From the IMG/VR virus record IMGVR_UViG_3300025930_000007, positions 186,001 to 250,000 of that record: DNA of 64,000 nucleotides; one strand, written 5' to 3'. Below the pieces are notes generated by a model, which was not told where the DNA came from, did no database searches, and worked only from the letters and a program-made list of their open reading frames with translations. The position numbers and the translations under genes are program-made. Below are positions 441 through 47,058 of the stretch, piece after piece. Position 1 is the first letter of the stretch; each line of letters starts with the position of its first letter.

Positions 441-1304
441 TCAGGGACAGCAGAAGGCCGTGTTGTCGGGGATGTTCCCGTTCGCGAAGAAGATGCTATC
501 GAAGGAGCCCTTCCCGTCGGCCTCATCGTTGTCCGTAATGATGATATCCATAACGGAAGGAGCTCCGGTGACAGGTCCAGGGACCAAAGGCGTGAGCGGG
601 ACATTCACGCCGTCCAACGTCAGAGTAAGGTTGCCCAGGCCATCACCCTTTAAGATGACCGAGTGCGTCGCCCCTTGCGCCGGAGTCCATGTGAACGTAT
701 CGAGAGTCGCCAGGTCTCCGGCAAAGCCAGTTCCATCACCCGTAAACTGGACGAGAGCCACCGCGTTACCGGCGCCGTTGAAAGCTCCGATGATATAGAC
801 CTTGTTGAAGGTCGGGGTAAAGTTGACCTCGGTGAACTCAAACCTCAACGTCCACGTCCCCGCCGGAGTCAGGACGGATTTTCTGATCTCGCCCTGAGGG
901 AGTCCGCTGAAGAGTGGACCGCTCCCGAGGTAGACCTTCTGGTCCGCGAAGACAACGGTGCCTGGTGGAGTTTCCACGCTCCAGCCGACGTTTCCCGTGG
1001 TAAAGCAATCGGCGAAGAGGTCGGCATTCACGCAGACAGGAGTAGGAGGCGGTGTCGGCGTAGGCGCAGGCGAAGGAGTAGGCGCAGGAGTCCCATTGTT
1101 TGCCCAAAGGCCAGAGGCCGGACCTCCGGTGGGCGAGAGACTCGGACGAGCCGTGGGCGTGGGTGCTGCCACGTTGAAGCAAACCATCTGAGGAGGCCGA
1201 TTAGGTTGCACGGGCGGCTTCACCGTGCATATGGCCTTCGGTGGTCGAACAACAGAGGGCGGCGCGGTCGGACGGGCAGGGCCCGGACGAGGCTTCCCCA
1301 TCAT
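441..1304 (-). CDS. Pro-rich N-terminus plus beta-rich domain; possible virion surface protein
   Basis: PAPTPSPAPTPTPPP linker then Gly/Thr/aromatic beta-strand pattern; start overlaps upstream stop. Confidence 0.6.
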   Translation of the reverse strand: MMGKPRPGPARPTAPPSVVRPPKAICTVKPPVQPNRPPQMVCFNVAAPTPTARPSLSPTGGPASGLWANNGTPAPTPSPAPTPTPPPTPVCVNADLFADCFTTGNVGWSVETPPGTVVFADQKVYLGSGPLFSGLPQGEIRKSVLTPAGTWTLRFEFTEVNFTPTFNKVYIIGAFNGAGNAVALVQFTGDGTGFAGDLATLDTFTWTPAQGATHSVILKGDGLGNLTLTLDGVNVPLTPLVPGPVTGAPSVMDIIITDNDEADGKGSFDSIFFANGNIPDNTAFCCP

Positions 1305-1606
1305 CAGGTCACCAGATCGATCATAACAACTTCGATATCGTCATCCAGCGGTCCCATGTCCGAACGCCAATCATCCCACTCGGAGATCGCATCCGTCCAC
1401 CGCTCTTCCTTGACTGCCTTGATGATGGAGCGAAGCTTGTCCGCATCATCCTCATCGAATCCGATCGAATCAAGGTCGGTTTGAGCCAGATATTCGATGC
1501 TCTTGGCCGCGGCTTGGTTCGCGACATGCTCGTTCAGGAACACGGTATAGTCCGTTTCCCTCGAGATGTCCTTGGAGATCAACAGCCATGCCTTATCAGC
1601 AGCCAT
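1304..1606 (-). CDS. hypothetical protein, distant member of the repeat-domain family at 45366-47058
   Basis: NEHVANQAA and WTDAISEWDDW resemble NEERAKQDA and VWGAYDEWHRF. Confidence 0.65.
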   Translation of the reverse strand: MAADKAWLLISKDISRETDYTVFLNEHVANQAAAKSIEYLAQTDLDSIGFDEDDADKLRSIIKAVKEERWTDAISEWDDWRSDMGPLDDDIEVVMIDLVT

Positions 1607-1609
1607 TTT

Positions 1610-2164
1610 TTATCCCTTGAAGTCGATCCGTGGATGTCTCTGCTCATCGATGACGAATCCAAAAGGACTACGTTCATCGTACTCGTCTGCCGGTACGACG
1701 AAATAAGCCGTGTCCTTGGGAAGCTTGTAGTCGGCCGTGCGGCCGCCGCGGCCAGCGAAGACCACGACTTGACCCGGAGGGACCTGGCTGTGCCAGTCGC
1801 CCCAAGCCGCCAAGCCGAGATAATCGTTCTTATGTAGAATCTTGAATGCGGTCTCGTCTTTAGCGCGAGATTCTCCCGGAGGAATAACTTCCTTGTAGTA
1901 AAGCTCGTATGCCATCGGAACGTAATTCTTCAGGATTTCCTTGGCCCGGGCTCTCTCTTCCTTGGTGAAGGCATTAGGGAAGACGGTCGCTACGATCGAC
2001 CAGTCGACATCCTCTTCATAAGCCCCATCCGGACTCCGCATGTATTCGGGAATGAGGAGGTTGAGTTGCTTTTCAACCAGGATGCCGCCATGACTGGCTG
2101 TCGAAATGCTCACGATTCCTGGAGAGAGAACCTTTCGCGACTGGACGGGGCCCCACTCGTGCAT
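1610..2164 (-). CDS. DUF7007-like protein
   Basis: WGPVQ...GIVSISTASHGG...YEEDVDWSIV pattern; AGGAG RBS. Confidence 0.6.
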   Translation of the reverse strand: MHEWGPVQSRKVLSPGIVSISTASHGGILVEKQLNLLIPEYMRSPDGAYEEDVDWSIVATVFPNAFTKEERARAKEILKNYVPMAYELYYKEVIPPGESRAKDETAFKILHKNDYLGLAAWGDWHSQVPPGQVVVFAGRGGRTADYKLPKDTAYFVVPADEYDERSPFGFVIDEQRHPRIDFKG

Positions 2165-2204
2165 GAGGATCTCCTAGGGGCGGAACAGTCGCTGAGTTTC
2201 TGGA

Positions 2205-2225
2205 CCCTCCAGGGGGACTGGAAGG
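2205..2225 (-). promoter_or_regulatory. 5' leader hairpin with TCCCC loop, after promoter TTGAAA-17-TATCCT
   Basis: Minus CCTTCCAG-TCCCC-CTGGAGGG; 14-bp identity with 45294-45307. Confidence 0.6.
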
Positions 2226-2264
2226 CCATCCCAAGGATACCTTCGGTAGGCCGCTCTTTCAAGA

Positions 2265-2771
2265 CTAGCGTGCAAGCCTCTCCAGAACCAGCTTGAGAGC
2301 CTCATCCGGTTCAAGGCGTTCAGTGTCGATCACGATCTCAGGATTTATCGGTGCCTCGTAGGGAGCTCCAAGGCCGGTGACATTCTTCTGCTCGTAGATT
2401 CCTCTCGTATCCCGGCTCTGGGCGACCGATTGGCTGCAGCGAGTGTAGATCTCGACGAACTGGATGCCGTCGCCGCCGGCTTCCGTCCTGGCCTCTTTCC
2501 TGCCCGCGAGATATGGCGAGACGCTCGCCACGACCGCGACCACCCCGTTACGAGCTAGGAGCCGCGCAATCCAGGCAATCCGCCTATTGTTTTCCAGCCG
2601 GTCTTCTTTGGAGAATCCCAGGGATGCTGAGATGACCTTCCGGATATCGTCGCCATCGATGATGTCGGCCGGCGTTCCCAGGTTTCGGTAATGACGGACG
2701 ATCCGGCGCGCGAGAGTTGTTTTTCCCGAAGCTGGAATGCCGGTGATCCAGAGGATGGGAGCCTTGCTCAC
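2265..2771 (-). CDS. cysC: adenylyl-sulfate (APS) kinase
   Basis: WITGIPASGKTT P-loop, DGDDIR, LGFSKEDR, YEAPINPE; GTG start overlaps upstream stop. Confidence 0.9.
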   Translation of the reverse strand: MSKAPILWITGIPASGKTTLARRIVRHYRNLGTPADIIDGDDIRKVISASLGFSKEDRLENNRRIAWIARLLARNGVVAVVASVSPYLAGRKEARTEAGGDGIQFVEIYTRCSQSVAQSRDTRGIYEQKNVTGLGAPYEAPINPEIVIDTERLEPDEALKLVLERLAR

Positions 2772-3007
2772 GCTTCGAGTTCCTGCGCTCCTACCCACAG
2801 TCGGAGGATCAGGTTCGCCAGTTCCTCTTGATGCTCATCGTTTGCCATATCAGCGATCGCCTGAAGATAGCCGGAATGATACGCACGCATCACGGACCCG
2901 ACAGGCGTCCTTAGCGCGGCTTCATAAGCTTCCTTGGCGCGCTCATACGCAAGATTCCGCTCTTCGACGGTGTGAAGTCCCATCAGCGGCTTTCTACGTG
3001 TCGTCAT
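2768..3007 (-). CDS. hypothetical protein
   Basis: 79 aa, GGGAG RBS, coupled to cysC. Confidence 0.65.
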   Translation of the reverse strand: MTTRRKPLMGLHTVEERNLAYERAKEAYEAALRTPVGSVMRAYHSGYLQAIADMANDEHQEELANLILRLWVGAQELEA

Positions 3008-3016
3008 AAGCGCTCC

Positions 3017-4237
3017 CTAATATTCGTGCGGCAGCAGAAGGGTCGTCATCAGATGGCCGTCGTCCGTGATGATATAGAAACGGACACCGGTAGACAACGT
3101 GTAGATACTCATCACCATGCCTTCCGTGGCCATATTCTGCCGGTTCAGATCGACATCAGGAGATTCCCCGAAGTCACCGCTGAAATGACGGTCGAGATAC
3201 TTGGCCGGCTGCTCTCCCGATTCTTCGAACGCGGCTTTCGCACCTGAAGTAATGCTCACCTGTGGTGAGGCAAATTGTGCCGGATTTGAAATGCCCATGG
3301 TCGGCGCCGGCGCCTTCGGTTGATGCCGTGCTTCGTAGCGCTTCCGTTCCTCATCGCGGCGAAGCTCAGAGATATAGAGATCATGTTCCCGCTGGCTGCG
3401 GATGTAGTTCCAGCCACCGCGAGTATCATGCTTCCTGACGTTCTTCTGCGCTTCCATCTCGTCGAATAGGGAACAGATCAGGTAAGCGTTCTTCCATGCC
3501 TTCTTAGGGACCAATTTGTCGATATTCTTCCGGATCAACGAGAAATAGGCATCCGAATATGCCTTTTCGTAAAGTTCTGCCTCGCCAGCATTCATGATCC
3601 ACTCGGATGGTGGGTGAATGAACCCAAACCAACGGATCATGGTCGGGTCAGGACTGGTTTGCCAGGTCCAGTTCCGACGTGCTTCTTCCGTGCCTTCGCG
3701 TTTGCCCTCGGAAATGATCATGGCCTTTCGAGGGTGATATTTTACGATCTCCGGCATCTTGCGTCCCAGAGTGATACCGAAATCATCTGGATCGTGACCG
3801 GCTTCTACATGAGTGGCAACTGCAGAGACCAGGCTGCAGAAGATCGGAAGTTTTCCCTCAAGCTCGCGTGGAATTAAGTCGGAAATGGATTCCTCTAATT
3901 GCTTTGTATAAGCTTCTGTGAAGGCTTCAGTCCAAATATTCCTCTCTCTGGCGCTGATGGATCTGGACTCACGGTATTGGTCCCACATCTCGCGACCGGA
4001 AATCGGGAGACCTTCTCTCAGTTCATGATCAAAGGTCTTATCCGCAAGTTCAGCGATTCTCTTGGGTGTGAGCGCCAACTCTCGTGCATCCCGCCGGAAA
4101 GCGAACCGGCTCCACGCTCTTTGGATTTCGAATAGCCCGGCTTCAGTACCGTACTCGCGCCACAGATCCAAACTACGATTTACGACCAGACGATTACCCC
4201 AGGCATTATGGTCGAAGCCGTAGGATGATCTTTTCAT
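3017..4237 (-). CDS. three-module protein: two internal repeats plus a small mobile-element domain (RHFSGDFG...TTLLLPHEY)
   Basis: AFTEAY...LIP...IFCSL versus AYSDAY...LVP...LICSL; modules separated by TLG and TMG. Confidence 0.75.
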   Translation of the reverse strand: MKRSSYGFDHNAWGNRLVVNRSLDLWREYGTEAGLFEIQRAWSRFAFRRDARELALTPKRIAELADKTFDHELREGLPISGREMWDQYRESRSISARERNIWTEAFTEAYTKQLEESISDLIPRELEGKLPIFCSLVSAVATHVEAGHDPDDFGITLGRKMPEIVKYHPRKAMIISEGKREGTEEARRNWTWQTSPDPTMIRWFGFIHPPSEWIMNAGEAELYEKAYSDAYFSLIRKNIDKLVPKKAWKNAYLICSLFDEMEAQKNVRKHDTRGGWNYIRSQREHDLYISELRRDEERKRYEARHQPKAPAPTMGISNPAQFASPQVSITSGAKAAFEESGEQPAKYLDRHFSGDFGESPDVDLNRQNMATEGMVMSIYTLSTGVRFYIITDDGHLMTTLLLPHEY

Positions 4238-4788
4238 CCCTTGCCTTTGCCTTTTCGCTTTTCCCTGTCGATAAACTGCCAGGTCCAGCCGCCGCCAAGC
4301 GGATAAAGCTTCATGGGTCCGCGGCCGCGGATATAGACCTCGACCGCCGGCTCTACCTGAGTCTCATTTTCCTGATCTTCAAAGGTGGTGATGAAGGCAT
4401 CCTGTTTGGGATCGTATACCGTAGGAGCGACGTGCTTCGTTTTCAGGGTGGTCTTTGAATACTTCATCGCCTCGTCGAATTCGAAGTATGGGACCGCCCA
4501 ACCATTCCAGTTCTCTCCGGTTGACCACACGCGATAGGTCTTCTCGACCCAATCGGCATAGACATCGACCGCTTTCCAGGCCGGGTTCTCGAGCTTCTCT
4601 TGAGGAACCTTGATGAAATCGTATTCCTCGACTTTGATCGGGTTGATGACCAGACCGAAGCCTCCACCGCGCGGGAAGGCATGAATCGTCCCGTCACCGT
4701 CCACGGAGTCGACCACGATGGCCCATTTGGTCCATTCATCGAGGTGCTTCCGCGGCACGATGATATCGTTGTGCTCAAAATAACGCAT
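4234..4788 (-). CDS. hypothetical protein (WNGWAVPYF motif)
   Basis: Start moved to ATG 4788, downstream of promoter TTGAAG-17-TATAGT and leader hairpin. Confidence 0.65.
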   Translation of the reverse strand: MRYFEHNDIIVPRKHLDEWTKWAIVVDSVDGDGTIHAFPRGGGFGLVINPIKVEEYDFIKVPQEKLENPAWKAVDVYADWVEKTYRVWSTGENWNGWAVPYFEFDEAMKYSKTTLKTKHVAPTVYDPKQDAFITTFEDQENETQVEPAVEVYIRGRGPMKLYPLGGGWTWQFIDREKRKGKGKG

Positions 4789-4816
4789 CGTGGCTCGCGG
4801 GCGGAATGCCTCTAGG

Positions 4817-4845
4817 GAAGGCCTAATGGGGGAGGGAAGGCCTTC
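4817..4845 (-). promoter_or_regulatory. 5' leader hairpin with TCCCTCCCCCATT loop
   Basis: Perfect 8-bp stem GAAGGCCT/AGGCCTTC. Confidence 0.65.
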
Positions 4846-4903
4846 TACGACACTGGTAACTATACCCTTGGCTCTAAAGGCCTTCAAGTTATAATCCTGC
4901 TGA

Positions 4904-5362
4904 ATGATCTCGATCGACGTCGGAGGAGGGCTCCTGGCCCTCATCGATGACGAAGATCTCCCCCGGGTGGCCCCCTTCACCTGGAGGATCCGCGAAGACG
5001 GCTATGTCCAGCGGACCTGGATCGAAGACGGCAAGACCTGCCATGAGCTCCTTCACCGCTTCATCATGAATGCCCGGGAAGAGGAGGTGGTGGATCACGA
5101 GAACGGTGACCGCTGGGACTGCCAGAAGGGGAACCTCAGGGTCGCAACCTTGAGCCAGAATGCCGCCAACCGCCCTACGACCTCCCTGGAAAGGGACTGG
5201 AAGGGCATTTACCCGCACGGAAACCGCTGGAAGGCCCGGATCAAGCTGGAAGGCCAGAACGTCTATCTGGGGAGCTTCCAGACGCCTCAGGAGGCCGCTT
5301 ACGCCTACGACGTGGCCGCGAAGCGCCTTTTCGGGGACTTTGCCCGCCTGAACTTCCCCTAA
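4904..5362 (+). CDS. HNH-AP2 homing-type endonuclease
   Basis: LHRFIM...VDHENGDRWDCQKGNLR HNH; WKARIK...YLGSFQTPQEAAYAYD AP2; TATAAT at 4890-4895. Confidence 0.9.
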   Translation: MISIDVGGGLLALIDDEDLPRVAPFTWRIREDGYVQRTWIEDGKTCHELLHRFIMNAREEEVVDHENGDRWDCQKGNLRVATLSQNAANRPTTSLERDWKGIYPHGNRWKARIKLEGQNVYLGSFQTPQEAAYAYDVAAKRLFGDFARLNFP

Positions 5363-5661
5363 CGGCTTCGCAACGACCAGAGGGACTTCCCCTCGTTCTT
5401 CTTCACCCAGGCCTCGATCGCCGGCTTGAGATCTTCAATTGAAAGTGCCTGGGCAATCGCTGGGCTGTATTTGTTGATCGAAGGTTGTTCATCCGGGGAA
5501 TGTTTCGGAACGGCAAGCAAGGCGCCGGCGGGAAGGTGGATTGGAAGGGATCCGTCTCGAGGTGTCAAGGTGACCGGAGGAATCAGATATCCGGCGAATT
5601 TCCCATCCGAGGTCTTCCAAGGGTAGATGTCGTTCTGCGGGTCCCCGACCAGGATGGTCAT
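5359..5661 (-). CDS. hypothetical protein, probably leaderless
   Basis: TATACT 7 nt upstream of ATG. Confidence 0.65.
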   Translation of the reverse strand: MTILVGDPQNDIYPWKTSDGKFAGYLIPPVTLTPRDGSLPIHLPAGALLAVPKHSPDEQPSINKYSPAIAQALSIEDLKPAIEAWVKKNEGKSLWSLRSR

Positions 5662-5889
5662 GGGCTGAAGTATAGCCTAGACCTTCATCTCTTTCCAACT
5701 GATCCGTTCGGACTTCTTGTGCGTGAATCTCGTCAAGGTAACCTCAAAGCCATTCTCCTTGAGGGCCTTCACGAGGATCCGGGAGAGGTCCTCCCGCGCG
5801 ATCGAGATCGCATCGTAGCACTCCTTCCCACCCGGCTCCTTCTGGATCCGGATGTTGAAGTAGACATCGGTGCTCTTTTCGACGTTCAT

Positions 5890-6261
5890 CTATTCAAGGG
5901 CTTTCTCACATTCCACCGAGCAGCAGCAAGTCGCCGGCGCTCCGGCATACACCAAGTCGCCGCAGTTCATGCACTTCCCGATCGGGAGCGGGCCATGATC
6001 TCGCTCGTTGTATTCCTCGTAGCAGCCCTGCTTACCCATCTTGAACTGTCCGACGGTGGGATCGACAACCGTTCCATCGGGAGTCTTGAGCCACCAGTGC
6101 GCCGGCATCCCGTCGATAGGCGACGTGTAATAGCCGCGGCAGAGGATGAGCTCAGGAAACGCTCTCTGCATTTCCTTCGATCTGGCCTGGCACATCCCGG
6201 CACCCAGATTCCCTTTGTAATTGGCGATCCAGGCATCGTACTCATCCGTCTTCGCAGTCAT
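5890..6261 (-). CDS. small papain/transglutaminase-like Cys-His-Asp protein
   Basis: GMC...AHWWL...VVDPTVGQF. Confidence 0.45.
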   Translation of the reverse strand: MTAKTDEYDAWIANYKGNLGAGMCQARSKEMQRAFPELILCRGYYTSPIDGMPAHWWLKTPDGTVVDPTVGQFKMGKQGCYEEYNERDHGPLPIGKCMNCGDLVYAGAPATCCCSVECEKALE

Positions 6262-9200
6262 TTCTTGTCCTTCTCGCAGATGCAGGTCCCCATTCCATTC
6301 ATGAGGGATCCGCACATCCGGTTTTCATGACGAAAGTGATTGCAAGCCCAGCAGCGCGGATGCGTCCCCAGCTTCCACGCGCCAAACACTGCTGCGATAC
6401 AGACGATCAGGACGACCATGATGACGAGCAGCCGGCCACAGCCATCCGACTGTTCCTGTTTCTTGATCGATTCACTTACCGGCTGCCAGCGACTCATCGG
6501 TTAACTCTCTGATCATTCTTCGAAGTTGCCATGATCTGGATGCGGATCTCCTCCCATCCCTTGCGGGCGGCTTTTCCGGTGATCTCATAGTACTCACCGC
6601 CTTTCACCTCGATCCGGAGTTCATCGCACTCCGGATCATTGTCGGGATCCTTGTCGAACCTGATCTCCGTGATGCTCTTGAGTGGGACTCCGATCTGGCT
6701 CTCTTCGTCATCCGTGAAGTAGATAAAAGTCATCGGCTCTCCTTCCTATTCCTTGATTGACAGATTGATCGCATTGGTCGCCAGTTCGATCAGGTCGACG
6801 GGCGAGCAGGTCGAACAGTGGTAGCCCATACATTGGTGCTGCCGGGCCCGGTTGCCCAAACTGTCCCGGATCTCGACCAAGGCATCTCTCGTGGCCTGAG
6901 CATGCTGATGGAGCAGGCAGAAAGCTACTTCAGGAGCAGCCGAGCCGTCCTCATAAATCAGCATCTCGCAGCCGCACTCCAGTTCCTGCTTGATCAATCA
7001 GTCCCCCACCTTCGTCATCCACCTGTCGAACTTCCGTTGAAGGGCGGTCTTCGTCTCCGTGAAGGCCGAAGACGCGCAGACCAGGACGTGCGTCTCGGGC
7101 TTGAACCAGTCCTTCCAGATCAATTTGATGAACGCATCTGCATTCCGCGAGCTGAAGAACTTGCATGAGAATTCGGCGCCGCGACCGTTGCTGTCGTAGA
7201 AAGTCTCGTACCAGTCACCCCGTTCGTCGTCCCAAACGGGATTCGGCTCTTCTTTGATGGAAACGTGATAGTGAGGATTCCCAGGCCATCGATCGACTCT
7301 GACGATGACCTGGCGCCGTTTGTCACAAGGAAACTTGCGCTTCAGAGGGAAATGGTGGTCCTCAAGATACTTCTCCCAGCGACGTTTGTCGTGGTCGATC
7401 CGCTCGTCAAGACTGGTCTTCTTTGCCATTACCGGGACACGTCCATGATGTCGTAGGCAATCTGCCTCGCGCAGTTGCAGTTCTTGCCCTGGCACTTCCA
7501 GACGTGATCCGCCGCGATCTGCCGGCAGCGATCGCGTTCCGCCAGGATAGCCGCCTGCGTCTCCATGAAGTGAGGAGGCAATCCAGGAGGCGACTCTGGA
7601 ATGATGATGACGCGATTCGGCCCGTGCGTCGCGCAACTCATCCGGCCGCCGGTGGAATCGCAGCCCGGACAGCCTTGGATCGGTATGTTGTCCATTGCTG
7701 GCTCCTCAGGTCTTCTGAACCACTTCCACCCAGGCCGGCTCAACGAACCGTCCGGTCTTATTCTCTTCGCAGTCTTTGTTCGCGCAGATCCAGGCGACTT
7801 CTTCGCGACGGTAGGCTTGTCCTTCGTCAACGCCCAAGACGCTGATTGTCTTGGAGGCAAGCATCCACCCACACTTGCAGCTTGGAATCTTCATGGCTAA
7901 ACAGACTCCCAGTTAACATCCCCGCAGCGCCAACACCAAAGCCATCCTTGAGCGTCCTGGCCTTCGCCCCAATAATCCACGCCGCCGCCCTCGACATGCT
8001 CGAACAGCTCTATCGTGCGGCCTTCGGTATCGTCTTTGTCGGCGTAGATCACGATCTCGTCGCGGTAGTCATCGAAGCCGCAGCTCGGGCAGCAGTAATT
8101 GTCCTCGACCAGCCAGCGCAGGAAGCGCTTGAGGCGCGTAAGGTGCCCACTCCAGAGCCAGTCCTTGACCTTAGGATAGAGCGGATACCGCGCCTTCCAC
8201 CCGCTCGAGCCTCCTTCGCGCAGGTCCCAGTGACTGAACCTGCTCCAAAGCCTCCGCGCCGGCACTCGGATGAAGAAGGCGAAGAAACGCCAGAACCACC
8301 AATACCTCGAACGTTCCGGCGGCCGCATGGTAGGCCTGGGAGGACGCTCATCATAGTCGTCGAAGGCCTCGTCCTCGATATGCCGGCGATGGTTCTCATT
8401 GTCGAAATCCAGCTCGGTGCCGGGCGGCAGCGCGATCTTCGTCTTCCTGCTCATCTGCGTTCCCCTCTCCAGTAAGCTTCGACTTCCTCCACCGTCCGGG
8501 TATCCGGTCGATGGCAGGGACATGGGCATAGATTCGTCTGGCGCGCCGTTTCCGTCTGCAGGTACGGATGGCCGCAAGAACTGCATTCCTTACCAGGAGG
8601 CAGAGGCGTCATGAGGTCTTCTTCTCGCTCGATAAGTGAAGTGTTGCCATATCCGCTTCGCTCACGGCCGCGAAGACGGCATTTTTCGGATCCAGCCTCC
8701 AGGCCTTGCCGTAGATCTTGCCCCGTTCGTGGGAGATGACCGCGCACCAGCGGCCGCGGCTATAGGAAAGGGTGAAGCGCATCCACCGGGATCTCTTCAG
8801 GATCCGGTCGACGCCGTCCAGGAGTGGCTCTTCGCTCATTTTCTGGACTTCCTGCATGCCGGGCATGACTTCTGCCAGCCGCAATGAGAGCAGTGTCCCG
8901 ACCAGCAGTTTTCTTTGCAACGCTTGGTCGGCTGGCAGCGGAAGGGCTTCATTCCTGCCATTTTGTGATGACGTTCCAACGGCTTATGGCCTCTTTTGGG
9001 GCACGTCCTCTTGCCGCAGCGCGTTCTCTTATCCATGGATCGTAACGGTGACTCGCACCGCTTCCCAGCCCTTCCAGCACCGGTTCTTCGGATCTGGCTT
9101 CATTCTGAAGAGGATCGGCAGATCCATCCCGGACGTCCCGTAATACAGCCCCCTCTTCTTCATCGCCCAGGCGGTCACCCGCTTCATCTTTGGGCTCATG

Positions 9201-9478
9201 GTGCTGAGGTCTTTGATCATGATCAGCGACATCCCTTCTGATGGCTCTGGATGGAGAAGGTGTAGCCCTTCTGTATCATGTTCACGATGCTGCTGACCAG
9301 GCAGGCCGGCGCGAAGTCCGGCATCAGGAGCAAATCAGGTTCCGGTCTACCCTGCTCGAACGAAAGGGTCACATGTTGCGGTTCCGTGATCCCTTCTTTG
9401 TAGAGGGCACCTTCCAGGGAAAAGCTTCCGCAGGTCTCGAGCCATTCCTTCGTAATGTTCATGTTAAATCCTGCTCGT

Positions 9479-20876: not shown

Positions 20877-20877
20877 T

Positions 20878-36085: not shown

Positions 36086-36114
36086 ACCGATGGAATCTCC
36101 TTCCTACCGGAACT

Positions 36115-36144: not shown

Positions 36145-36162
36145 TTGAAATCGGAGGGAGAT

Positions 36163-36981: not shown

Positions 36982-36994
36982 GCCAACCCGCGTC

Positions 36995-37267: not shown

Positions 37268-37289
37268 AGACAAGCCTCCAAAGAGGCAT

Positions 37290-37312
37290 GTCCCTTTGGG
37301 GGAGGGAGGGAC
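37290..37312 (-). promoter_or_regulatory. leader hairpin with TCCCTCCCCCAAA loop after promoter TTGATC-17-TATAGT
   Basis: GTCCC/GGGAC stem; first 11 loop nt identical to the loop at 4825-4837. Confidence 0.65.
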
Positions 37313-37359
37313 CGCCTATCTTGGACTATAACATCCTTGCATCCCCAGATCAAAAGACA

Positions 37360-38278: not shown

Positions 38279-38279
38279 G

Positions 38280-38720: not shown

Positions 38721-39255
38721 TTTTCGTTTCCTCAGGGGGTAGGACGAGTTTCATCTCACGATTGGGCGGAACGATGGGAGTCAAATGAACTTGCGGTGGT
38801 ACGGTCCTAGGATCCACTGACGAGTTCATCACCATCATATAAGACCCGGAATATCCAGTCGACCAGTACGAACTGGACATCATCAGTTTCTGGCCATTCA
38901 GGAAGTATTCCGGACGCCCACTGGAATCCGGGATCATCTTATGGTCATGCTTCTGGATCCGGTTGTCCCACCTCATTCCACAGAGAGCGCACGTCTCAAA
39001 ATACGCAAATTCTTCAGCGCAACCCTTACAGGAATGCCAAGTCTTGATGCCGTGCTTGCAGCGAACGGCGGCATCGTTGGCCTTCTGGGAAGACTTATTG
39101 TCCTGAATCTCCTTGATCCAGCCGGCGACCTGGGCGACGAGGATAACGCCTGCCCAGGCAAGCGAGGAGACCGGCTTGATGCCCCGATTCCAGTCGACCA
39201 TCATGGCCACCAGCATCACTGGAATCGCTGCATACCAGAACACCAAGTATTTCAT
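38713..39255 (-). CDS. membrane protein with Cys/His motifs
   Basis: Two TM helices, CKHG...CKGC. Confidence 0.6.
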   Translation of the reverse strand: MKYLVFWYAAIPVMLVAMMVDWNRGIKPVSSLAWAGVILVAQVAGWIKEIQDNKSSQKANDAAVRCKHGIKTWHSCKGCAEEFAYFETCALCGMRWDNRIQKHDHKMIPDSSGRPEYFLNGQKLMMSSSYWSTGYSGSYMMVMNSSVDPRTVPPQVHLTPIVPPNREMKLVLPPEETKNA

Positions 39256-40262
39256 CCCTTGACCTCGTTCAATACGATTGCCTGACGCATCCAGTGCCCA
39301 TGGGTTTGGACGTGGTTCTTCCTAACGTATTTCGCAACAACATCCTTAAATTCCTTGTACTGGAAGGCCCGTGCGACGCGAACGACGTAACCTTCGCAGG
39401 GATCTCCGTTGTATAGGTCGATCTCGATGGCCTTCGTCCAACTCTCGTCCCAGAGACCACGATGGAACACGGGCACCGTCTTCAGATCCAGGAGCGCGCA
39501 CCAGCTCTCCGTCTCCTCCCAGGAGAGGCATTCGTTCTTCTCGTTCCAGATCGAGAAGACCAGGAAGTGCGCCGGCAGATTCAGGTAATGGATCGAATGC
39601 TTGGCGTAGAGGTTCTCGCCGCAGATCCTCCAACCAGGCGGAATATCATGTCCGATCCGGCGATGCAGGCCCCAGAGCCAGTCCCTGGAGGGATGCGGCG
39701 CCGTGTCGATCGAGCGGGCATGGAAACCATCCGGGTACATGGATGTCTGCTCCCCGTCCATCTTGATCGTGATCACGACCGCCTGGCCCTCCAGGCCGTG
39801 GAGCGATGGGATGATCTTGTCGTCGCTTGAGACGTTCGGGCTCCAGGGAAGGTGATGGGTCCGCTGGTATTTCACCCGATCCGTGAAGAGGTGCAGGACC
39901 GGCTTCAGGATCTTCTGGACGCTCTCGTCATGGAAGAGTTCGCCCTTCAGACGCTGGCCGTTCGGGAGGATCGGATTGCCCCACTTGTCCACCGGCTGGT
40001 CCGAGTAGAAGTGAGGGGGCAGGAGAACCTCCTGGATCCCGCAGCGCTCCCGGAGCTCGTCGCACGAAAGCTCCGTGGACTCTGCCAGGAGATGATGGAC
40101 CTCGCAGACGGAGGCCCCATTCGAGACGTAGTATCCCCCATCGGGCCACAGTCGGCGTTCGATGATGTGGTGAGCATCCTTCGCCGGCTGCCCGCAGACA
40201 ACGCATTCCCAGCCGTCTCGCTTGAAGACGGCATTCCTGAACTCGTCTCTACTTAGCAACAT
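39252..40262 (-). CDS. HNH domain fused to an RNA-ligase-family nucleotidyltransferase
   Basis: RDGWECVVCG...DAHHIIER...CEVHH; KYQRTHHLPWS, KMDGE, CGEN, EGYVVR, KYVR. Confidence 0.85.
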   Translation of the reverse strand: MLLSRDEFRNAVFKRDGWECVVCGQPAKDAHHIIERRLWPDGGYYVSNGASVCEVHHLLAESTELSCDELRERCGIQEVLLPPHFYSDQPVDKWGNPILPNGQRLKGELFHDESVQKILKPVLHLFTDRVKYQRTHHLPWSPNVSSDDKIIPSLHGLEGQAVVITIKMDGEQTSMYPDGFHARSIDTAPHPSRDWLWGLHRRIGHDIPPGWRICGENLYAKHSIHYLNLPAHFLVFSIWNEKNECLSWEETESWCALLDLKTVPVFHRGLWDESWTKAIEIDLYNGDPCEGYVVRVARAFQYKEFKDVVAKYVRKNHVQTHGHWMRQAIVLNEVKG

Positions 40263-40797
40263 CTCTCACCGGCCAGACCTTGTACTCGGGATGAGCCTTC
40301 TTGAAGGCCTCCGCACACGGAAGGCAGGGAAAATCCCAGAAGCCGTACTTCAGATCGCCACGACCGAACGTGACCGTCTCGTCATCGATCGACGTCGACG
40401 CGCTGCAATCCGCGCGGCCGCAGGCTTGCTTGGGCTTGGCTTTTTCTTCCATGACGTGCGTCCAGTTCATGTCGATGAATTCTTTCGGGAAGTAGGACGG
40501 GAAACAGACTGTCGACCGTCCATTCACAATCACCTTGACCGAATCATGTCCTTCTCGAAGCTTCAGGATCTCGTAGTCGATGTCGGTCCCGGCTTTCTTT
40601 TCGTCCTCGATCAGCTTCATCAGGTATTCGCGGCCCTCGCGCCAGGTCTTGAGATCCTCGGCCGCCTGGGCTGCCTTCCATCGCATGTAATCAGGTGAAT
40701 TCAGGTATTCGATGGCCAAGCGAGCCCACTCTTTGGTGGAGATCTCGCCTTTCATGCCCTTGGCGAAGCTTTCCGCGAATTCCTTCTTACTGATCAT
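40249..40797 (-). CDS. hypothetical protein
   Basis: 182 aa coupled ORF. Confidence 0.6.
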   Translation of the reverse strand: MISKKEFAESFAKGMKGEISTKEWARLAIEYLNSPDYMRWKAAQAAEDLKTWREGREYLMKLIEDEKKAGTDIDYEILKLREGHDSVKVIVNGRSTVCFPSYFPKEFIDMNWTHVMEEKAKPKQACGRADCSASTSIDDETVTFGRGDLKYGFWDFPCLPCAEAFKKAHPEYKVWPVRDVAK

Positions 40798-41097
40798 TTT
40801 GCCGCCACGCCCTCTTGGGCCGTGTCCTGTCCCTTCCGTGACTTGGCGACTTCGTTCTCCACCAGGGCCTTGATCCGAAGAAGGAGCTTCGTCTGCCAGT
40901 ATTTCGGCTGGTAATCGAGGCCACCTTCCTTCATATCGGTCTCGACCATTCGAACGATGTCTTCAGCGGTCATTTCATCCCCTTCCTCTTTGGAAGCTTG
41001 TGCCCTATGGCCTTATCCCAGCACGGCGGACACATCGCATAGGTATATGGCCCGATCCACTTGCAGCGGCATTGGTGCTGGCGTCTCTTGAGTCCCA

Positions 41098-41417
41098 TCA
41101 CTTTGCCGTGTCGTAGGTCACGTCCTCGAACCACTCCGAGAGCATGAAGGCGACCGCGGCCTCCTTGTGCTCATGCTTGGGAGCGAACGACCGCATCACC
41201 GTCACGACCGCCGCAAGCGCCTTCTTGGTCTCGACGCCGGTCTTCGGAGTCCACTTCGCGTTCTTCATGCCCAGGAAGAACCAGTCCGACATCACCTTCT
41301 CCCATTTCCTCTTGTTCGGGAAGTCGTCGGGGATGTCCTTCATCTTCGGCATGATCTCAAGCGCCTTGTCTCCGCCGAAGACCTGGTCGACCATGGTAAC
41401 GTCCGGAATCATAAGCA
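41098..41417 (-). CDS. hypothetical phage protein
   Basis: SFAPKHEHKEAAVAF motif; start approximate. Confidence 0.6.
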
Positions 41418-41419
41418 TT

Positions 41420-42079
41420 TCAGTTCCCCTTCCTCTTGAAGATCCCCAGGCTGTCATGAATCCCATCCCAGACCGGGATCTGGACCTGTTTCACCATCTC
41501 CCAGGTCTTTTCGATCTCCGGATCATAGCCGGTGCAGCCGTCATCGATCTCGCCGACGTAGGCCACCGTATCGCCCTTGTAACCGTTGAAGATCTTCACG
41601 TTGTCCACGCTCGGCCAGATAACCAAGAGCGTCCGCTCATGGACGTCCTTCCTTCGGAAGATCTGTTGGTAGCTGACCGGCTCAATCTGGAAGAACGTTC
41701 CGACCGTGAACGGATATAAGCCCGAACCGTCATCACAGGCAATCACGTCGGCGCCGAGAAGCTGAAGGAGCTTGGACCAGTATCCCGTTCCGGCACCGAT
41801 TTCGACGATGCCCTTTGGGGATACTTTCAGAATCTCCCGAAGGATCTTTTCCGTAGGCACTGCGAAGCCGTACTTCTCGATGCACTTCGTTCTCGCATGG
41901 AACTCGGAGAGGATCTTCTCGGAATAGTTCGGATCGTAGATATTGCGGCTATTGTGTCCGAGCCACCACTCCGATAGAAAGGGATTATGCTCCCGATCCC
42001 AAGTTGTCGGAGAAAAGGGCGTCGCCCACTTCTCGGCCCACTTCTCCATCCAGGCCTTATCTTTTTCTAGCATCGTCAC
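41420..42079 (-). CDS. class I SAM-dependent methyltransferase-like protein
   Basis: IVEIGAGTGYW, LLVIWP, YVGE. Confidence 0.7.
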   Translation of the reverse strand: MTMLEKDKAWMEKWAEKWATPFSPTTWDREHNPFLSEWWLGHNSRNIYDPNYSEKILSEFHARTKCIEKYGFAVPTEKILREILKVSPKGIVEIGAGTGYWSKLLQLLGADVIACDDGSGLYPFTVGTFFQIEPVSYQQIFRRKDVHERTLLVIWPSVDNVKIFNGYKGDTVAYVGEIDDGCTGYDPEIEKTWEMVKQVQIPVWDGIHDSLGIFKRKGN

Positions 42080-42086
42080 ACCGCCA

Positions 42087-42115
42087 ATGGTATTCTTGGT
42101 TTACCTCTTAGTCAA
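42087..42115 (-). promoter_or_regulatory. promoter TTGACT-17-TACCAT with GGTAAACC box
   Basis: Minus TTGACT AAGAGGTAAACCAAGAA TACCAT, 7 nt before GTG. Confidence 0.7.
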
Positions 42116-42127
42116 GGAGATATCGAA

Positions 42128-42304
42128 ATGCGTTTCCTCCTGATTCTGCTCGCGGCTGCGGCCGTCTACCTGTCGATCCACATGCTCGGCAAGCACGGGA
42201 TAGAACCCAGCTCCCAGGACTTCTGGGCTTGTCTGGTGCCGCCCGCCGCGGCCGGCGCTCTCGTCGTCCTGGCTCCCAAGCTCAAGAAGAAAGCGAAGGA
42301 CTAA
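42128..42304 (+). CDS. 58-aa membrane protein not in the ORF track
   Basis: AAGGAG RBS; MRFLLILLAAAAVYL...; stop overlaps the next ATG. Confidence 0.6.
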   Translation: MRFLLILLAAAAVYLSIHMLGKHGIEPSSQDFWACLVPPAAAGALVVLAPKLKKKAKD

Positions 42305-42501
42305 TGCCGAAGAAGTCTTCAAAAAAGCAAGAGGGCAAGGTCTCGGACGTCGAGATCTATGAGGAGGACGGCTGGTACGTCAAGTACACCGGGACTCACG
42401 GGAAGAAGAACATCATGAAGCTCGACGCCGTCACCTACAAGGATGCGAAGTTCGAAGCGTCCAGTCTCCTCGATGTGCCTGAGGACCAAATCGAGAACTA
42501 A
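42304..42501 (+). CDS. hypothetical protein
   Basis: MPKKSSKK start coupled to upstream stop. Confidence 0.65.
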   Translation: MPKKSSKKQEGKVSDVEIYEEDGWYVKYTGTHGKKNIMKLDAVTYKDAKFEASSLLDVPEDQIEN

Positions 42502-42504
42502 GCC

Positions 42505-43677
42505 ATGCCTTACGTTTTAGCCGACGGGAGAGGCCAGAAGATCGGGCTCTATACCACCTGCCTGGATATCTCGTATGCCCAGGCCGAACTCCTTCTCATG
42601 GTCGAGAAGGCGAAACTCGATCATCCTGACGCGTTCATCGTAGGCTACGCAGATTCTCAGCTCCAGATCTCCGTCGAACGCTTCCTTGAGCCTCACAAGC
42701 AGTATCCCAAGGAACTGGAGAGAATCGAGGAACTCCGGTCCAAGATCAAGGCCAAGGGAATGCATTCCTTCACCGTCCGTCATTTCGACGATGACTGGGA
42801 AACGTTCCTGAAGTCGAAGCCTCTCCTCCAGATCGGCCGCTGCATCGACAGCGTGGTCAATCAGATGGTGGATTTCAAGGCCAAGGGCAAAGACGAAGAA
42901 GTCGCCGAAATGGTCGAAGACATTTTCGCCAATCCCTTGCATGCCGGCATCCATCAGGACTTCCCACCTACCGTCTCCGACGAAATCTGGATTGCGGATG
43001 CCGCCAAATCCATCCGCAGGATCACTCCGGAGAAGTGGCTGAGAAGACTCCTGCATGTTATGCGCTTCTATTTCAAAGGAAAGCCGAAGATCGCCCTTCC
43101 CCATAAGAATGACCGCTGTCCTTGCGGCAGCAGCAAGAAATACGGCAAGTGCTGTGGTTACGGCGTCGAGCACGAGGACCCGGAAAACTGCAAACTCGGG
43201 ATGCATCAGTTCACGATGTGGGAAGAAGTCGATGGCAAGTTCATCCGAACCTGCGAGAAGTGCTTCAGGGTCTACGAAGCTCCATGGTTTGAGGAAGTCG
43301 ATTATGATGGAGTAGACATCCTGGTCATTGGCTGCCGGGCCTGCGCTGAAAAACCGACTGACGAAGACTTCGCTCGGGAAATGGAGGAAGCCCAGAAATG
43401 GCATATCTGCGGCTCATGCATGAAGCCATTCGGGCTAAGGCATATCATCCTCGAGCACACCTGGTCCGATGGAAAGCACATCGGCCATTGGAAAGGGACT
43501 GAGATCGATACCAAAGAGGAAGCCGTCGATCTTCAGTCGATCGGACTAGGAAAGGGAGTGTTCCTTCACAAGGAATGCTTCATGAAGGCAATTCCAGGCT
43601 GGCCCAAATCGGCCAAGCCATCCGGCAGAGGACCGGCCAAGGAAATCATGCGGGATATTACGCCTACTGCGAGTTGA
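42505..43677 (+). CDS. SEC-C motif and multi-CxxC protein
   Basis: NDRCPCGSSKKYGKCC. Confidence 0.75.
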   Translation: MPYVLADGRGQKIGLYTTCLDISYAQAELLLMVEKAKLDHPDAFIVGYADSQLQISVERFLEPHKQYPKELERIEELRSKIKAKGMHSFTVRHFDDDWETFLKSKPLLQIGRCIDSVVNQMVDFKAKGKDEEVAEMVEDIFANPLHAGIHQDFPPTVSDEIWIADAAKSIRRITPEKWLRRLLHVMRFYFKGKPKIALPHKNDRCPCGSSKKYGKCCGYGVEHEDPENCKLGMHQFTMWEEVDGKFIRTCEKCFRVYEAPWFEEVDYDGVDILVIGCRACAEKPTDEDFAREMEEAQKWHICGSCMKPFGLRHIILEHTWSDGKHIGHWKGTEIDTKEEAVDLQSIGLGKGVFLHKECFMKAIPGWPKSAKPSGRGPAKEIMRDITPTAS

Positions 43678-44779
43678 TCACCCGATACCGCCTGCCCATC
43701 ATGGCGCCACCACCTCCTCCAGGATTGACGGCAACCATCGAGCTACCGCCATAGCTCGAAACGTTTTCGAAGCCGGAGGAATCCTGCTGGCAGGAATATC
43801 CTTGAGCCCTCAGGATTGCCATGGTCGTCGAATCCACGCCTCTCCGAACGTCATCTCCATAGCTGCAGGTGTAGGTAGCCTGAGTGAGCTGCGGATTCAA
43901 CCCATTGGTATTAAGAAGACGCTGCTCGGGGGTCATCCCGCCGCCATAAGCGCTGCCATAGTTATACTGAGCAGCGGTGTTCCAGTTATAGAAACCGTGG
44001 CCGCTCTGATCCCCGCCGCTGTTCCAGGAATACATTTGGCCCAGGCGCCGACCTTCCATACCGGGCTTTCGGAACGAGCAGGGGTCGATGATCCTCCAGG
44101 CTTCCGCCTGAATCTCGGGTGGGAGTTGGGAGACGATCACCTCAGCATTGTTGCGATAAGTCAGGATGTTTTGAGCGGCCATGTTGATGCCGTTCCGATT
44201 CTCCTGCATCTCCTGAACTGCAGCACTCTTGTCTGCCCCGATCTGATCGAGAGCGGCCTGGGCAGCTTTGTATTCGTCTGGATTCCGGTGAGTGTCATTC
44301 CAGATCTTTTCCTGCTGCGCGAGAACCTTCTCGGCATTGCCTTCCGCGACGACGAGATCCTGACGGCGCTTCGAAGCCTCGATGTACTTCGAGAAGAAGT
44401 AGGCATCGTTCGACCGCTCTGTATTGATCTTGTCGGCGATCGATGTCAGTTGAGAGACAGCCTCTGGATAGCTCGTTTCGAGGGCCGTCGGCGCGGCCAT
44501 CCGGTGTCTGTGTCCAGAAAGCAGCAAATAGCCCGCAGCGGCTGCCGCTGCCACGCCACCGATAATGAGCGGAACATTGGCCCCTGGAGTAGGAGCCGAC
44601 GCCGGGATTCCAGATCCGGATCCTGGCTTGCAGCCAGGCGGATAGTAGGTCCCATCCGCACAACGCTGCCCTCCTTCAGGCGTCGGCTCGCAGTTGGGTG
44701 ACGTCTGGCCCAGCGTCGGGCCACGCAACGGCGTGACGGAGGCCCGTTCCCAAGGCGAGCGGCTGAAGAAGGTCTGCAT
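43664..44779 (-). CDS. modular membrane/coiled-coil protein with LRGPTLGQ, MEGRRLGQ and MMGRR motifs
   Basis: Cys mini-domain, TM helix LIIGGVAAAAAAGYLLL, coiled coil; AGGAG RBS. Confidence 0.8.
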   Translation of the reverse strand: MQTFFSRSPWERASVTPLRGPTLGQTSPNCEPTPEGGQRCADGTYYPPGCKPGSGSGIPASAPTPGANVPLIIGGVAAAAAAGYLLLSGHRHRMAAPTALETSYPEAVSQLTSIADKINTERSNDAYFFSKYIEASKRRQDLVVAEGNAEKVLAQQEKIWNDTHRNPDEYKAAQAALDQIGADKSAAVQEMQENRNGINMAAQNILTYRNNAEVIVSQLPPEIQAEAWRIIDPCSFRKPGMEGRRLGQMYSWNSGGDQSGHGFYNWNTAAQYNYGSAYGGGMTPEQRLLNTNGLNPQLTQATYTCSYGDDVRRGVDSTTMAILRAQGYSCQQDSSGFENVSSYGGSSMVAVNPGGGGGAMMGRRYRVINSQ

Positions 44780-44787
44780 ATGGTCTC

Positions 44788-45243
44788 CTAGGCGTTCGAA
44801 GACAGGTTGGTGACGCCGTTCACCTCAAGCGCGATCAGCACGGCCGTGCCGGTGATCAGCCAAAATGCCGGATTGCCAAGGAAGGACATCGAATCCTCTG
44901 ATCCGGGCCCCGACAGTGCAGGAGCTTGATAGCCCTCACGCATCCTGGGATATGGCTTCCAGGCCTCTCCTCCCGGCCGGGCTCTGAACGAAACCTTGCC
45001 CCTGGGAGAGGCCGCAGCAGCAGCAAAAGGATCTCCACCATCTGATGGAAATGAAGCTTGCTCTATCTTCTTGTGCGCCGGCTTGAAGTAGTCGTAGAAA
45101 TCGCGCGTCTTGGCGGAAGGGCCTGGCACCGGTGTCTTTGGTGAAAACACATCGTAGATCGAGCTGCCCTTGGGCTTGGGCTTCAGGAAGTCGAACAGCT
45201 CATCGGATTTCCCAAGGGATCCAGGGCCCCAATGATTCATCAT
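44788..45243 (-). CDS. C-terminally anchored membrane protein
   Basis: FDFLKP / YDVFSP / YDYFKP repeats; AFWLITGTAVLIAL. Confidence 0.7.
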   Translation of the reverse strand: MMNHWGPGSLGKSDELFDFLKPKPKGSSIYDVFSPKTPVPGPSAKTRDFYDYFKPAHKKIEQASFPSDGGDPFAAAAASPRGKVSFRARPGGEAWKPYPRMREGYQAPALSGPGSEDSMSFLGNPAFWLITGTAVLIALEVNGVTNLSSNA

Positions 45244-45289
45244 GAGAAAAAACCATTTCGGGCGGAATGAGTTCTACCGGACCTTTAGA

Positions 45290-45310
45290 CCGCCCAGGGG
45301 GACTGGACGG
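45290..45310 (-). promoter_or_regulatory. leader hairpin with TCCCC loop after promoter TTGAAG-16-TATGAT
   Basis: CCGTCCAG-TCCCC-CTGGGCGG; TTCCGCCC at 45260-45267. Confidence 0.65.
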
Positions 45311-45365
45311 ACAGCTTAATCATACCGCTTAACCTTGGGACTTCAATGGGTTTTTCCCTGTCCGT

Positions 45366-46412
45366 TTATAGCGGTTCAGGCTCCGGTGTAGGGATGACCC
45401 GCATCGTGCCGATCGACATTTCCAACGGGAACGGATGGAAGATCGGACTCCATTTATGTTCGAACTCTTTGTATTCGAGATAGGCTCTCCAGACCATGTC
45501 ATCGGAAAGCAGATAATGCATTCGCTCGACCAGTTCCGTAGCGGACTTCACGTATTTGCGATTACGTCCCGCAATGGCCTCGCTGCTCGCATGCATGCCG
45601 AGATGTTTGACCAATCGCATCAAATAGTCCCCGGCGTCTTGCTTGGCACGCTCCTCGTTCGTATGACGCCCCGCATGGGAGGCCCCGCCGAAATCGGCAT
45701 ACTGAACAAGCCAGCTCCTCATGGCGCCGAGACCCATACCCTTGTCCTTGGGGAATAGCCGTCTGAGAATCCCTTCTCTGAAGGCCTCGAGGAATTGCCT
45801 TTCGGACTCTTCGTCCTGATAAGGGAACTTCCCTTCCAGCGCTCTTTCAGACGCCACGATTGCCTTCAAGAATTGCTCTTGCGTGATCCGGATGTTCTTC
45901 AGTTGGGCTTTATTGGAGACGACCTCCAGGAGATCTTCTACGATCGCAGCCATCTTGTCTTCACGGCGATTGATGGCAAGCGTAATCTTTCCTTTTTCAG
46001 CATATTTCTCAATGGGACGAATCTTCGTGCGTTCGATGAACGGAATCTTGTTTTTTAGGCCGGTTTCTGGAGAGCCCTCGACAATCACTGTGCCGATTTT
46101 TGCGTAGAGTGGCCGCCCGAACTCATTTTCGAAGCGAAGGTAGAAGTCCTCCCAAAGATCGTAGGCATCCCAAACCTTCCCTGCCTGGATAAGCTGCTGT
46201 ATCTGAGGGATCAGGTATTGCATCCCCTCGAAGAATTCAGGATGCTCAGGAGCCTCGAATTCGCCGCCTTCCGAAAGAAAGTGCTCCAGATTTCTCCTGA
46301 TCCATGTACCGAGCAGGTATCCCACTTCGCCCGACGCGCTCGCCTCGTTGTTGTGGATGGTAGGCGAGCCGACTTCCAGGGGATAGGCCCATTGGACCTT
46401 ATAGCGTTTCAT
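45366..46412 (-). CDS. protein with two copies of an unknown ~120-aa domain, second copy after GMGLGA
   Basis: VWDAY..W..F...PL...IGT versus VWRAY..Y..F...PL...IGT. Confidence 0.75.
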   Translation of the reverse strand: MKRYKVQWAYPLEVGSPTIHNNEASASGEVGYLLGTWIRRNLEHFLSEGGEFEAPEHPEFFEGMQYLIPQIQQLIQAGKVWDAYDLWEDFYLRFENEFGRPLYAKIGTVIVEGSPETGLKNKIPFIERTKIRPIEKYAEKGKITLAINRREDKMAAIVEDLLEVVSNKAQLKNIRITQEQFLKAIVASERALEGKFPYQDEESERQFLEAFREGILRRLFPKDKGMGLGAMRSWLVQYADFGGASHAGRHTNEERAKQDAGDYLMRLVKHLGMHASSEAIAGRNRKYVKSATELVERMHYLLSDDMVWRAYLEYKEFEHKWSPIFHPFPLEMSIGTMRVIPTPEPEPL

Positions 46413-47058
46413 GGGTGAACCCAAAATGGTGAAAGGTGTCCCGCCTGGTCAACCGATACCAGTGTTCGATGTTCTTCGGGTCTTTCACTTCCTCGTCGTA
46501 GCTCTTGGAGATCGTCATCACCGTATTCATGATCTCGGCGAAGGGCGGAGGCTGGGCGCCGCTGTCTACGAACCTCTGGTTGACCTCCGTAGCGATCGTC
46601 CTCCAGGTCTCGTGCAGCGTCTTGAGGAAATTCCACTGCCAGTCCATCTGTTTCCCGCGATCCATGCTTCGTGCCAAGCTTTCGGCTGGGTGGTACTTGG
46701 GTGTCACGGTGGGCCCTGGTCCGTCCACGATGACCGTTCCGATCAGGACCCAGAGCGGCGTTGGAAGAACGTCTTCCCAACGATTCATGAACCGATGCCA
46801 TTCGTCGTAGGCGCCCCAGACTTCATCGTCCTCGAGGAGGACGCCCAGGGATTCGAGCATCTGCTGGGCATCCTCGATGAATCCAGGGAAGTTCCGTTCA
46901 TAGCCCCAGACGGTCGCATATTGGGGCAACTCTTCATCGAATTTCGATGCAAGAGCGGCAAGATGCCGGGCAGTGTCGACTTTGGCGATCTCCTCCAAGG
47001 CATGGACGCTCGTGCAGTCCTTCTTGAAGTCCAGGATCCTGCAAATCCGCCAAGACAT
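46399..47058 (-). CDS. paralog carrying the same unknown domain
   Basis: VWGAYDEWHRF...PLWVLIGTVIV; GGAG RBS before ATG 47058. Confidence 0.75.
   Translation of the reverse strand: MSWRICRILDFKKDCTSVHALEEIAKVDTARHLAALASKFDEELPQYATVWGYERNFPGFIEDAQQMLESLGVLLEDDEVWGAYDEWHRFMNRWEDVLPTPLWVLIGTVIVDGPGPTVTPKYHPAESLARSMDRGKQMDWQWNFLKTLHETWRTIATEVNQRFVDSGAQPPPFAEIMNTVMTISKSYDEEVKDPKNIEHWYRLTRRDTFHHFGFTHETL

Follow-up and report, generated by a model that had tools for sequence, protein, structure and literature searches.

A 64,000-nt stretch of the genome of a soil jumbo phage (hereafter the window; bases 72601-136600 of a 236 kb IMG/VR virus record that is estimated to be about 90% complete) encodes a domain of about 115 residues in two neighbouring genes. 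The copies A, B and C present in these genes belong to one domain family, which was previously undescribed and is one of the very many phage families without known function. A further copy, D, encoded some 44 kb from these genes as a small protein near the start of the window, probably belongs to this family as a highly divergent member, closest to the stand-alone subgroup of the proteins P0123, P0129 and P0130. A preliminary description of the window, made from its letters and translations, had pointed out four copies of an unknown domain. The motifs it quoted were all found where it had placed them, and the gene limits it used (46412 and 47058) are the starts supported by database homologues. 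The genes and domain copies are arranged as follows.

46705-47058, minus strand: copy C, residues 1-118 of the 219-aa protein P0004; similarity to A and B by BLASTP and hhalign
46399-46704, minus strand: remainder of the 219-aa protein, a C-terminal tail of about 101 aa, with the stop codon; no domain detected, no likeness to copies of the family, no Pfam match
46059-46412, minus strand: copy A, residues 5-122 of the protein P0001
45723-46058, minus strand: middle region of P0001, residues 123-234, helical and basic with an isoelectric point (pI) of 9.6, ending in a flexible GMGLGA linker; no Pfam match
45366-45722, minus strand: copy B, of the C-terminal subtype, plus the stop codon (domain 45369-45722), residues 235-352 of P0001
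1304-1606, minus strand: copy D, a stand-alone, very acidic protein of 100 aa (pI 4.1)

The numbering of P0001 follows the open reading frame (ORF) 45366-46424(-). The protein starts at the ATG at 46412, its database homologues beginning with MKRYKV, and comprises 348 aa, in which the basic helical middle and the flexible linker separate copies A and B. P0004 is P0002 (ORF 46399-47136(-)) read from Met27; its start at the ATG at 47058 agrees with a database protein of exactly 219 aa, and it consists of copy C and the tail. Acidic pI values of 4.1-4.7 were obtained for copies A, C and D. All translations used the standard code 11 only.

Three secure copies of one domain

The homology of copies A, B and C was detected by BLASTP with the single sequences (A-B, E 1e-6; A-C, E 4e-12; B-C, E 3e-11). 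Homologues were also gathered for the three window proteins (23, 37 and 18 proteins), the domains were excised and the family alignments were compared by hhalign. This comparison yielded probabilities of 98.7% for A-B (E 2.8e-16), 99.4% for A-C (E 2.9e-21) and 98.5% for B-C (E 4e-15), with E values of 0.13-0.65 for the internal controls, the P0001 middle and the P0002 tail. For these three copies, the common origin proposed in the preliminary description is well established.

In a first profile comparison the P0001 middle region had seemed to resemble the P0002 tail (E 0.0016). This resemblance was caused by the inclusion of P0024 and was lost when this sequence was removed (E 0.17). P0024, a metagenomic protein of 350 aa, is a natural hybrid which combines a C-type copy and a tail as in the 219-aa protein with a B-type copy as in the 348-aa protein.

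Extent and novelty of the family

A domain alignment of 71 sequences was searched against 1.84 billion representative proteins and matched 60 clusters (50% identity) at E<=1e-3, including 41 at E<=1e-10. The family is accordingly small. Wherever the context was readable, family members were located on phage-like contigs. Members with a single copy measure 109-145 aa and those with two measure 229-372 aa; P0082, P0083, P0095 and P0105 have three. Hidden Markov models (HMMs) of the subtypes assigned the N-terminal copies to the A or C type, and the C-terminal copy of multi-copy relatives nearly everywhere to the B type. In the P0107 cluster a C-type copy precedes a GNAT acetyltransferase domain (PF00583, 30.5 bits at a cut-off of 20.7). 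P0111 has a B-type copy behind an N-terminus that appeared kinase-like by eye; the matches of this part reached only E 0.4-1, and no claim is made for it. With three secure paralogous copies and one probable divergent copy in this phage, and one to three copies per protein in its relatives, the preliminary description was right to speak of an expanded family.

None of the three proteins gave a match above noise in Pfam, PHROGs or PADLOC, and a sequence search of the PDB with both family profiles retrieved no match. Structure-based comparisons by Foldseek (PDB and BFVD), VIA-align (48,161 chains) and the ESM Atlas (shape and features) returned only generic or weak rows. Foldseek on predicted structures had been recommended as a check in the preliminary description; no convincing neighbour and no known fold came out of it. 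At curated or significance thresholds, the domain matches no described family in Pfam, PHROGs, PADLOC or the PDB. In biological terms its members form one more of the numerous uncharacterised families of accessory proteins in phages. It is nevertheless a clean, alignable and unannotated domain of soil jumbo phages with subtypes, copy-number variation and one enzyme fusion, and the domain alignment is sufficient to seed a Pfam or PHROG entry and to choose constructs for structural or interaction studies.

Copy D, a probable divergent member

Direct comparisons weigh against the assignment of copy D to the family. D was not significantly similar to P0001 (E 0.039) or P0002 (E 1.2) in BLASTP, and the hhalign probabilities of its family with those of A, B or C were only 0.2-0.3%. 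In HMM scans of the genome, which here always cover the 3479 six-frame ORFs of the 236 kb record, D stayed within noise with a three-copy HMM (E 3.7) and with a 177-copy HMM (E 1.8), and a profile of 13 stand-alone members found it at only E 0.043. No D-family protein was present among the 60 clusters matched in the whole-library search. The best direct result was a collinear alignment of 92 columns between the 177-copy profile and the D family, with a probability of 8.6% (P 0.004); this score was reached by two of 280 column shuffles and one of 180 block shuffles (3/460 together). Since D had been picked by eye among about 100 proteins, significance at this level is unconvincing on its own. 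Direct probabilities between 0.2 and 8.6%, together with the failure of the large profiles to lift D out of the genome-scan noise, would be expected if D were an unrelated small acidic helical protein that shares a strand/three-helix layout and some aromatic positions with the family by chance.

The evidence for membership came from intermediate sequences. An HMM of the D family was compared with 83 domain copies of distant members and matched P0130 (109 aa, E 1.2e-4) and P0123 (134 aa, E 1.5e-4) in collinear alignments of almost full length. The corresponding scores of 14.8 and 14.5 bits were not reached by any of 200 shuffled sets, which peaked at 10.8 bits, and the reversed set scored 3.9 bits. 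P0130 and P0123 are themselves secure members of the family, with E values of 5.9e-5 and 2.5e-7 in the whole-library search and hhalign probabilities of 96.5-98.6% against A, B and C. When the two proteins were run individually against the ORFs of the genome, P0001 came out on top in both cases and D took second place (E about 0.05), before the true copy C. The profile built from P0130, P0123 and P0129 retrieved P0001 (E 1.2e-17), P0002 (E 3.2e-5) and D (E 0.002), the next ORF having an E value of 2.2; its model positions 2-94 aligned to residues 4-87 of D. This three-member profile was chosen after the link to D had been seen, and the relatedness of P0130 and P0123 to each other means that they provide one independent link.

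A chance resemblance would have to account for these matches, for the rank of D above copy C and for the identical order of structural elements with motifs at equivalent junctions (see below), and we regard it as the considerably less probable explanation. The profile similarity that the preliminary description had expected for 1304-1606 was found in part: direct similarity did not appear, and a link through intermediates did. The genome search with a family HMM proposed there left D within noise, and the only related record in IMG/VR was a near-identical one. Distant paralogues like D are recoverable only via intermediate sequences, which matters for the annotation of phage proteins without known function.

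Beyond A-D, no further domain copies were found in the 236 kb genome. Just under significance with several family profiles was a 154-aa ORF outside the window (G000:C1:51456-51917(-)) containing the motifs HWVIWY...CRAEKAELA. It scored E 0.95-7 in hmmsearch, and hhalign with the three-member profile gave a probability of 13% (E 0.002) over 54 columns; this ORF may be a partial fifth relative. The D-family proteins P0067, P0068 and P0081 carry the label 'rubrerythrin' in the Joint Genome Institute (JGI) annotation, which looks spurious because it obtains no support from Pfam.

Predicted structure and conserved residues

AlphaFold2 modelled P0001 with a predicted local distance difference test (pLDDT) value of 86.2 from an alignment of 35 sequences, and D with a value of 86.6 from 19 sequences. 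The only stretch of P0001 modelled with low confidence, residues 227-235 (pLDDT below 50), coincides with the linker; copy B directly follows GMGLGA, as the preliminary description had observed. The predicted elements are listed in the numbering of P0001 or D.

Copy A: strands 8-14 and 22-24; helices 27-57, 62-80 and 84-97; strand 112-117
P0001 middle: helices 153-175, 182-196 and 205-223
Copy B: strands 238-243 and 249-254; helices 257-285, 289-307 and 311-328; strand 340-344
Copy D: strands 5-12 and 19-23; helices 26-46, 52-66 and 70-84; strand 90-97

In the models of A, B and D the elements follow the common order strand-strand-helix-helix-helix-strand. Strand 1 of the family contains a conserved aromatic residue, and strand 2 ends with H, Y or F. 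Helix 1 opens with E-x-x-A and helix 3 with W-x-A-Y, and P-L...G-T extends from just ahead of the last strand into it. D shares with the family the E-x-x-A that opens helix 1, a W...A/W within helix 3 and the P-L that precedes the last strand. The position of H19 is occupied by H in 131 copies, Y in 14 and F in 10, and also by G or T, so that about 20% of the copies have a residue other than H. E22 is present in 155 of 168 copies and replaced by K, P, R or Q in about 8%; W81 is found in 162 and Y84 in 152 copies. In D, the H19 position is taken by F, and the E and A of the helix 1 motif are kept. Across 176 distinct copies no polar residue was strictly invariant, and the conserved positions mostly carry hydrophobic or aromatic residues of the kind that forms a protein core.

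Copies D and B have several weak structural neighbours in common over equal chain ranges (3kav_A, 5ckw_B, 8j9a, 4zsv_A, 8e55_A, 9dn6_A and 3t47_A). These common neighbours fit a similar shape of the two models and are no proof of it. The first of them is PA2107 from Pseudomonas aeruginosa (PDB 3kav/3kaw), which comes from structural genomics, has no known function and counts among the closest known proteins.

The C-loop leader element

The preliminary description had placed all copies in operons with a 'C-loop'. The sequence CCCTCCCCC occurs at five exact sites in the window, and their alignment revealed a -10-like TATAGT or TATGGT followed by a hairpin with a run of C in its loop. The loop holds CCCUCCCCC, which contains the anti-Shine-Dalgarno-like CCUCC. 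This hairpin is probably the element named in the preliminary description. The five hairpins are located at:

4810-4854, minus strand: 3.2 kb upstream of D, with only tightly packed genes of the same strand in between
37280-37324, minus strand
47064-47108, minus strand: leader of the P0002/P0001 operon; -15.0 kcal/mol, z -2.8
47153-47197, plus strand: leader of a DNA ligase gene; mirror image of 47064-47108, with which it forms an 11-nt inverted repeat
53288-53332, minus strand

With one hairpin in the P0002/P0001 leader and another upstream of D, the sequence is consistent with the claim that the copies lie in C-loop operons. Compared with shuffled sequences, three of the five sites folded clearly better (z -2.1 to -2.8) and two did not. 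The window showed no over-representation of a 14-nt version of the C-rich motif, and a general hairpin scan was of no help with this element, which was seen only by aligning the five exact sites.

Genomic context

The genes of the 219-aa and 348-aa proteins are co-oriented, 10 nt apart and at the head of a leftward operon, in which the 348-aa gene is followed by the genes of a 151-aa and a 371-aa protein, both with hydrophobic segments and without a family. Features around this operon are:

47059-47205, no strand assigned: divergent control region between the operon and the DNA ligase gene, with an 11-nt inverted repeat at 47082-47092 and 47169-47179
47206-48534, plus strand: ATP-dependent DNA ligase (PF01068, E 6e-18), divergent from the operon
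49148-50344, plus strand: 398-aa protein beside the ligase, matching only phrog_15826 (function unknown, E 1.8e-27); syntenic in the relative L004
42505-43677: SEC-C motif protein
39252-40262, minus strand: RNA ligase (PF09414, E 6e-31)

The gene order ligase, 213-aa gene, 361-aa gene, small genes, SEC-C protein and RNA ligase is kept in a relative on a 167 kb contig of GCA_037024415.1, the proteins of which are only about 57% identical to those of the window. The divergent control region is preserved there nearly base for base (L004:7859-8000) although the flanking proteins have diverged to this extent. Its conserved part includes two promoter-like hexamer pairs arranged back to back, TGGACT-17-TATGAT toward the ligase and TTGTTA-17-TATCTT toward the operon, as well as the G-rich/C-rich inverted repeat, which puts CACCCTCCCCC into each leader. 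Among database proteins, the longest contigs are equal in size for eleven pairs drawn from the 219-type and 348-type families, which suggests that the members of these pairs share contigs.

Copy D is located in a different neighbourhood:

2265-2798, minus strand: APS-kinase-like P-loop gene (E 3.9e-41), upstream of D
1610-2164, minus strand: DUF7007 gene (E 3.5e-32); D begins 3 nt after its stop
441-1304, minus strand: gene of a proline-rich 287-aa protein without family, its start overlapped by the stop codon of D

The triad of kinase-like gene, DUF7007 gene and D (1304-2798(-)) is kept in a relative. No mention of DUF7007 was found in the papers searched. Stand-alone family members are encoded in arrays of small unannotated genes, near an integrase together with DUF4160 and DUF2442, or near a gene with a DnaJ domain. 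In the genome, the two loci are at 74 kb and at 118-120 kb, both a long way from its two GNAT genes (24 kb and 171 kb). A DNA ligase and an RNA ligase occur within 8 kb of each other, and a P-loop kinase-like gene is present at 2265-2798; the three may constitute a nucleic-acid repair set.

Possible role of the domain

As a whole, the observations are best explained by an undescribed phage domain that acts without catalysis, as a binding or adaptor module, in soluble accessory proteins of the cytoplasm, an explanation to which we give about an even chance. The lack of a strictly invariant polar residue and of any match to an enzyme family suggests a non-catalytic module, and its fusion to a GNAT domain in P0107 points to an adaptor. 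A cytoplasmic accessory role is suggested by the acidic nature of A, C and D, by the neighbouring ligase and kinase-like genes, by the arrays of small genes and by the proteins themselves, in which no signal peptide or hydrophobic stretch of membrane-span type was visible by eye. The accessory proteins would be made from operons with C-loop leaders in a non-structural part of the genome. The module might act alone, as a tandem of N-type and C-type copies or joined to an enzyme, and in takeover, counter-defence or nucleic-acid repair it would probably serve to keep hold of a macromolecule of the host or the phage; duplications would provide additional binding surfaces. A complex prediction for P0001 and P0004 gave a score of 0.06, which carries no weight either way.

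A bolder version of this explanation sees in the domain a new phage-specific fold, used as the modular target-binding unit of a novel class of host-takeover or counter-defence proteins, with the two loci as independent deployments. If it were true, the unit would be employed alone (in D and the relatives of 100-130 aa), as heterotypic tandems, or for aiming an enzyme such as GNAT at its substrate; we consider this version doubtful. Also doubtful is a role of the two-gene pair as accessory factor of the adjacent DNA ligase or repair module, co-regulated through the shared divergent region and acting on phage DNA or RNA ends. The conserved order of ligase, 219-type and 352-type genes and of the DNA between them in a relative with about 57% identical proteins fits such a role, as do the RNA ligase 5 kb away in both phage and relative and the basic middle of P0001. 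Stand-alone and tandem relatives are, however, encoded on contigs without a ligase nearby, and no nucleic-acid-binding family was matched. The degree of conservation of E22, H19, W81 and Y84, along with the N-E-H retained by D at the equivalent junction, could also indicate a small enzyme or a ligand pocket, for example a hydrolase or a binder of nucleotide signals, whose working residues would be Glu (start of helix 1), His/Tyr (end of strand 2) and Trp/Tyr (helix 3). Bona fide members tolerate Y, F, G or T in place of H19 and K, P, R or Q in place of E22, the conserved positions are mostly of the core type, and no enzyme fold or family was matched, all of which makes catalysis or ligand binding at this site improbable.

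In the preliminary description the copies had been taken for an expanded family of virion-delivered effectors, which would be carried in the particle and enter the cell along with the DNA. The T4 internal proteins and Alt, T7 gp14-16 and the N4 virion RNA polymerase would be the precedents for such phage-specific, host-acting proteins; they are encoded with or near structural genes and are present in virions. A family that is restricted to phage-like sequences, fast-evolving and variable in copy number would suit this interpretation indirectly, and as most structural genes of this phage are unrecognisable, structural neighbours might have escaped notice. The window proteins differ from these injected proteins in that the identified neighbours of their genes are ligases, the SEC-C protein, the APS-kinase-like gene and the DUF7007 gene. 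The weak terminase-like match at 189-191 kb, the only packaging-like gene found, is about 70 kb away, and the small-gene arrays that contain stand-alone relatives adjoin an integrase or a DnaJ-domain gene. No similarity to known structural, ejection, internal-head or effector families was found, and delivery with the virion is unsupported and appears very improbable.

Small acidic counter-defence proteins of phages and plasmids, such as the DNA mimics Ocr and ArdA or anti-CRISPRs like AcrIF25 (PDB 8jdh), are among the closest known systems and have neither sequence similarity nor a convincing fold similarity to the domain. GNAT acetyltransferases with accessory N-terminal domains resemble P0107; the window proteins differ from them in having no GNAT domain.

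The phage and its distribution

The window has a G+C content of about 57% and contains no tRNA genes. The largest ORF of the genome encodes only about 800 aa. Among the 20 largest ORFs, PHROGs recognised helicases, a primase, a methyltransferase and the one weak terminase-like protein, and no structural proteins. GenBank phages gave neither a DNA nor a protein match and included no cultured relative, and the sole match in IMG/VR was the 266 kb record IMGVR_UViG_3300025930_000007, which is near-identical to the 236 kb record. None of the sequencing runs recorded as RNA contained the locus. DNA of the phage was present in soil and rhizosphere metagenomes of about 15 studies.

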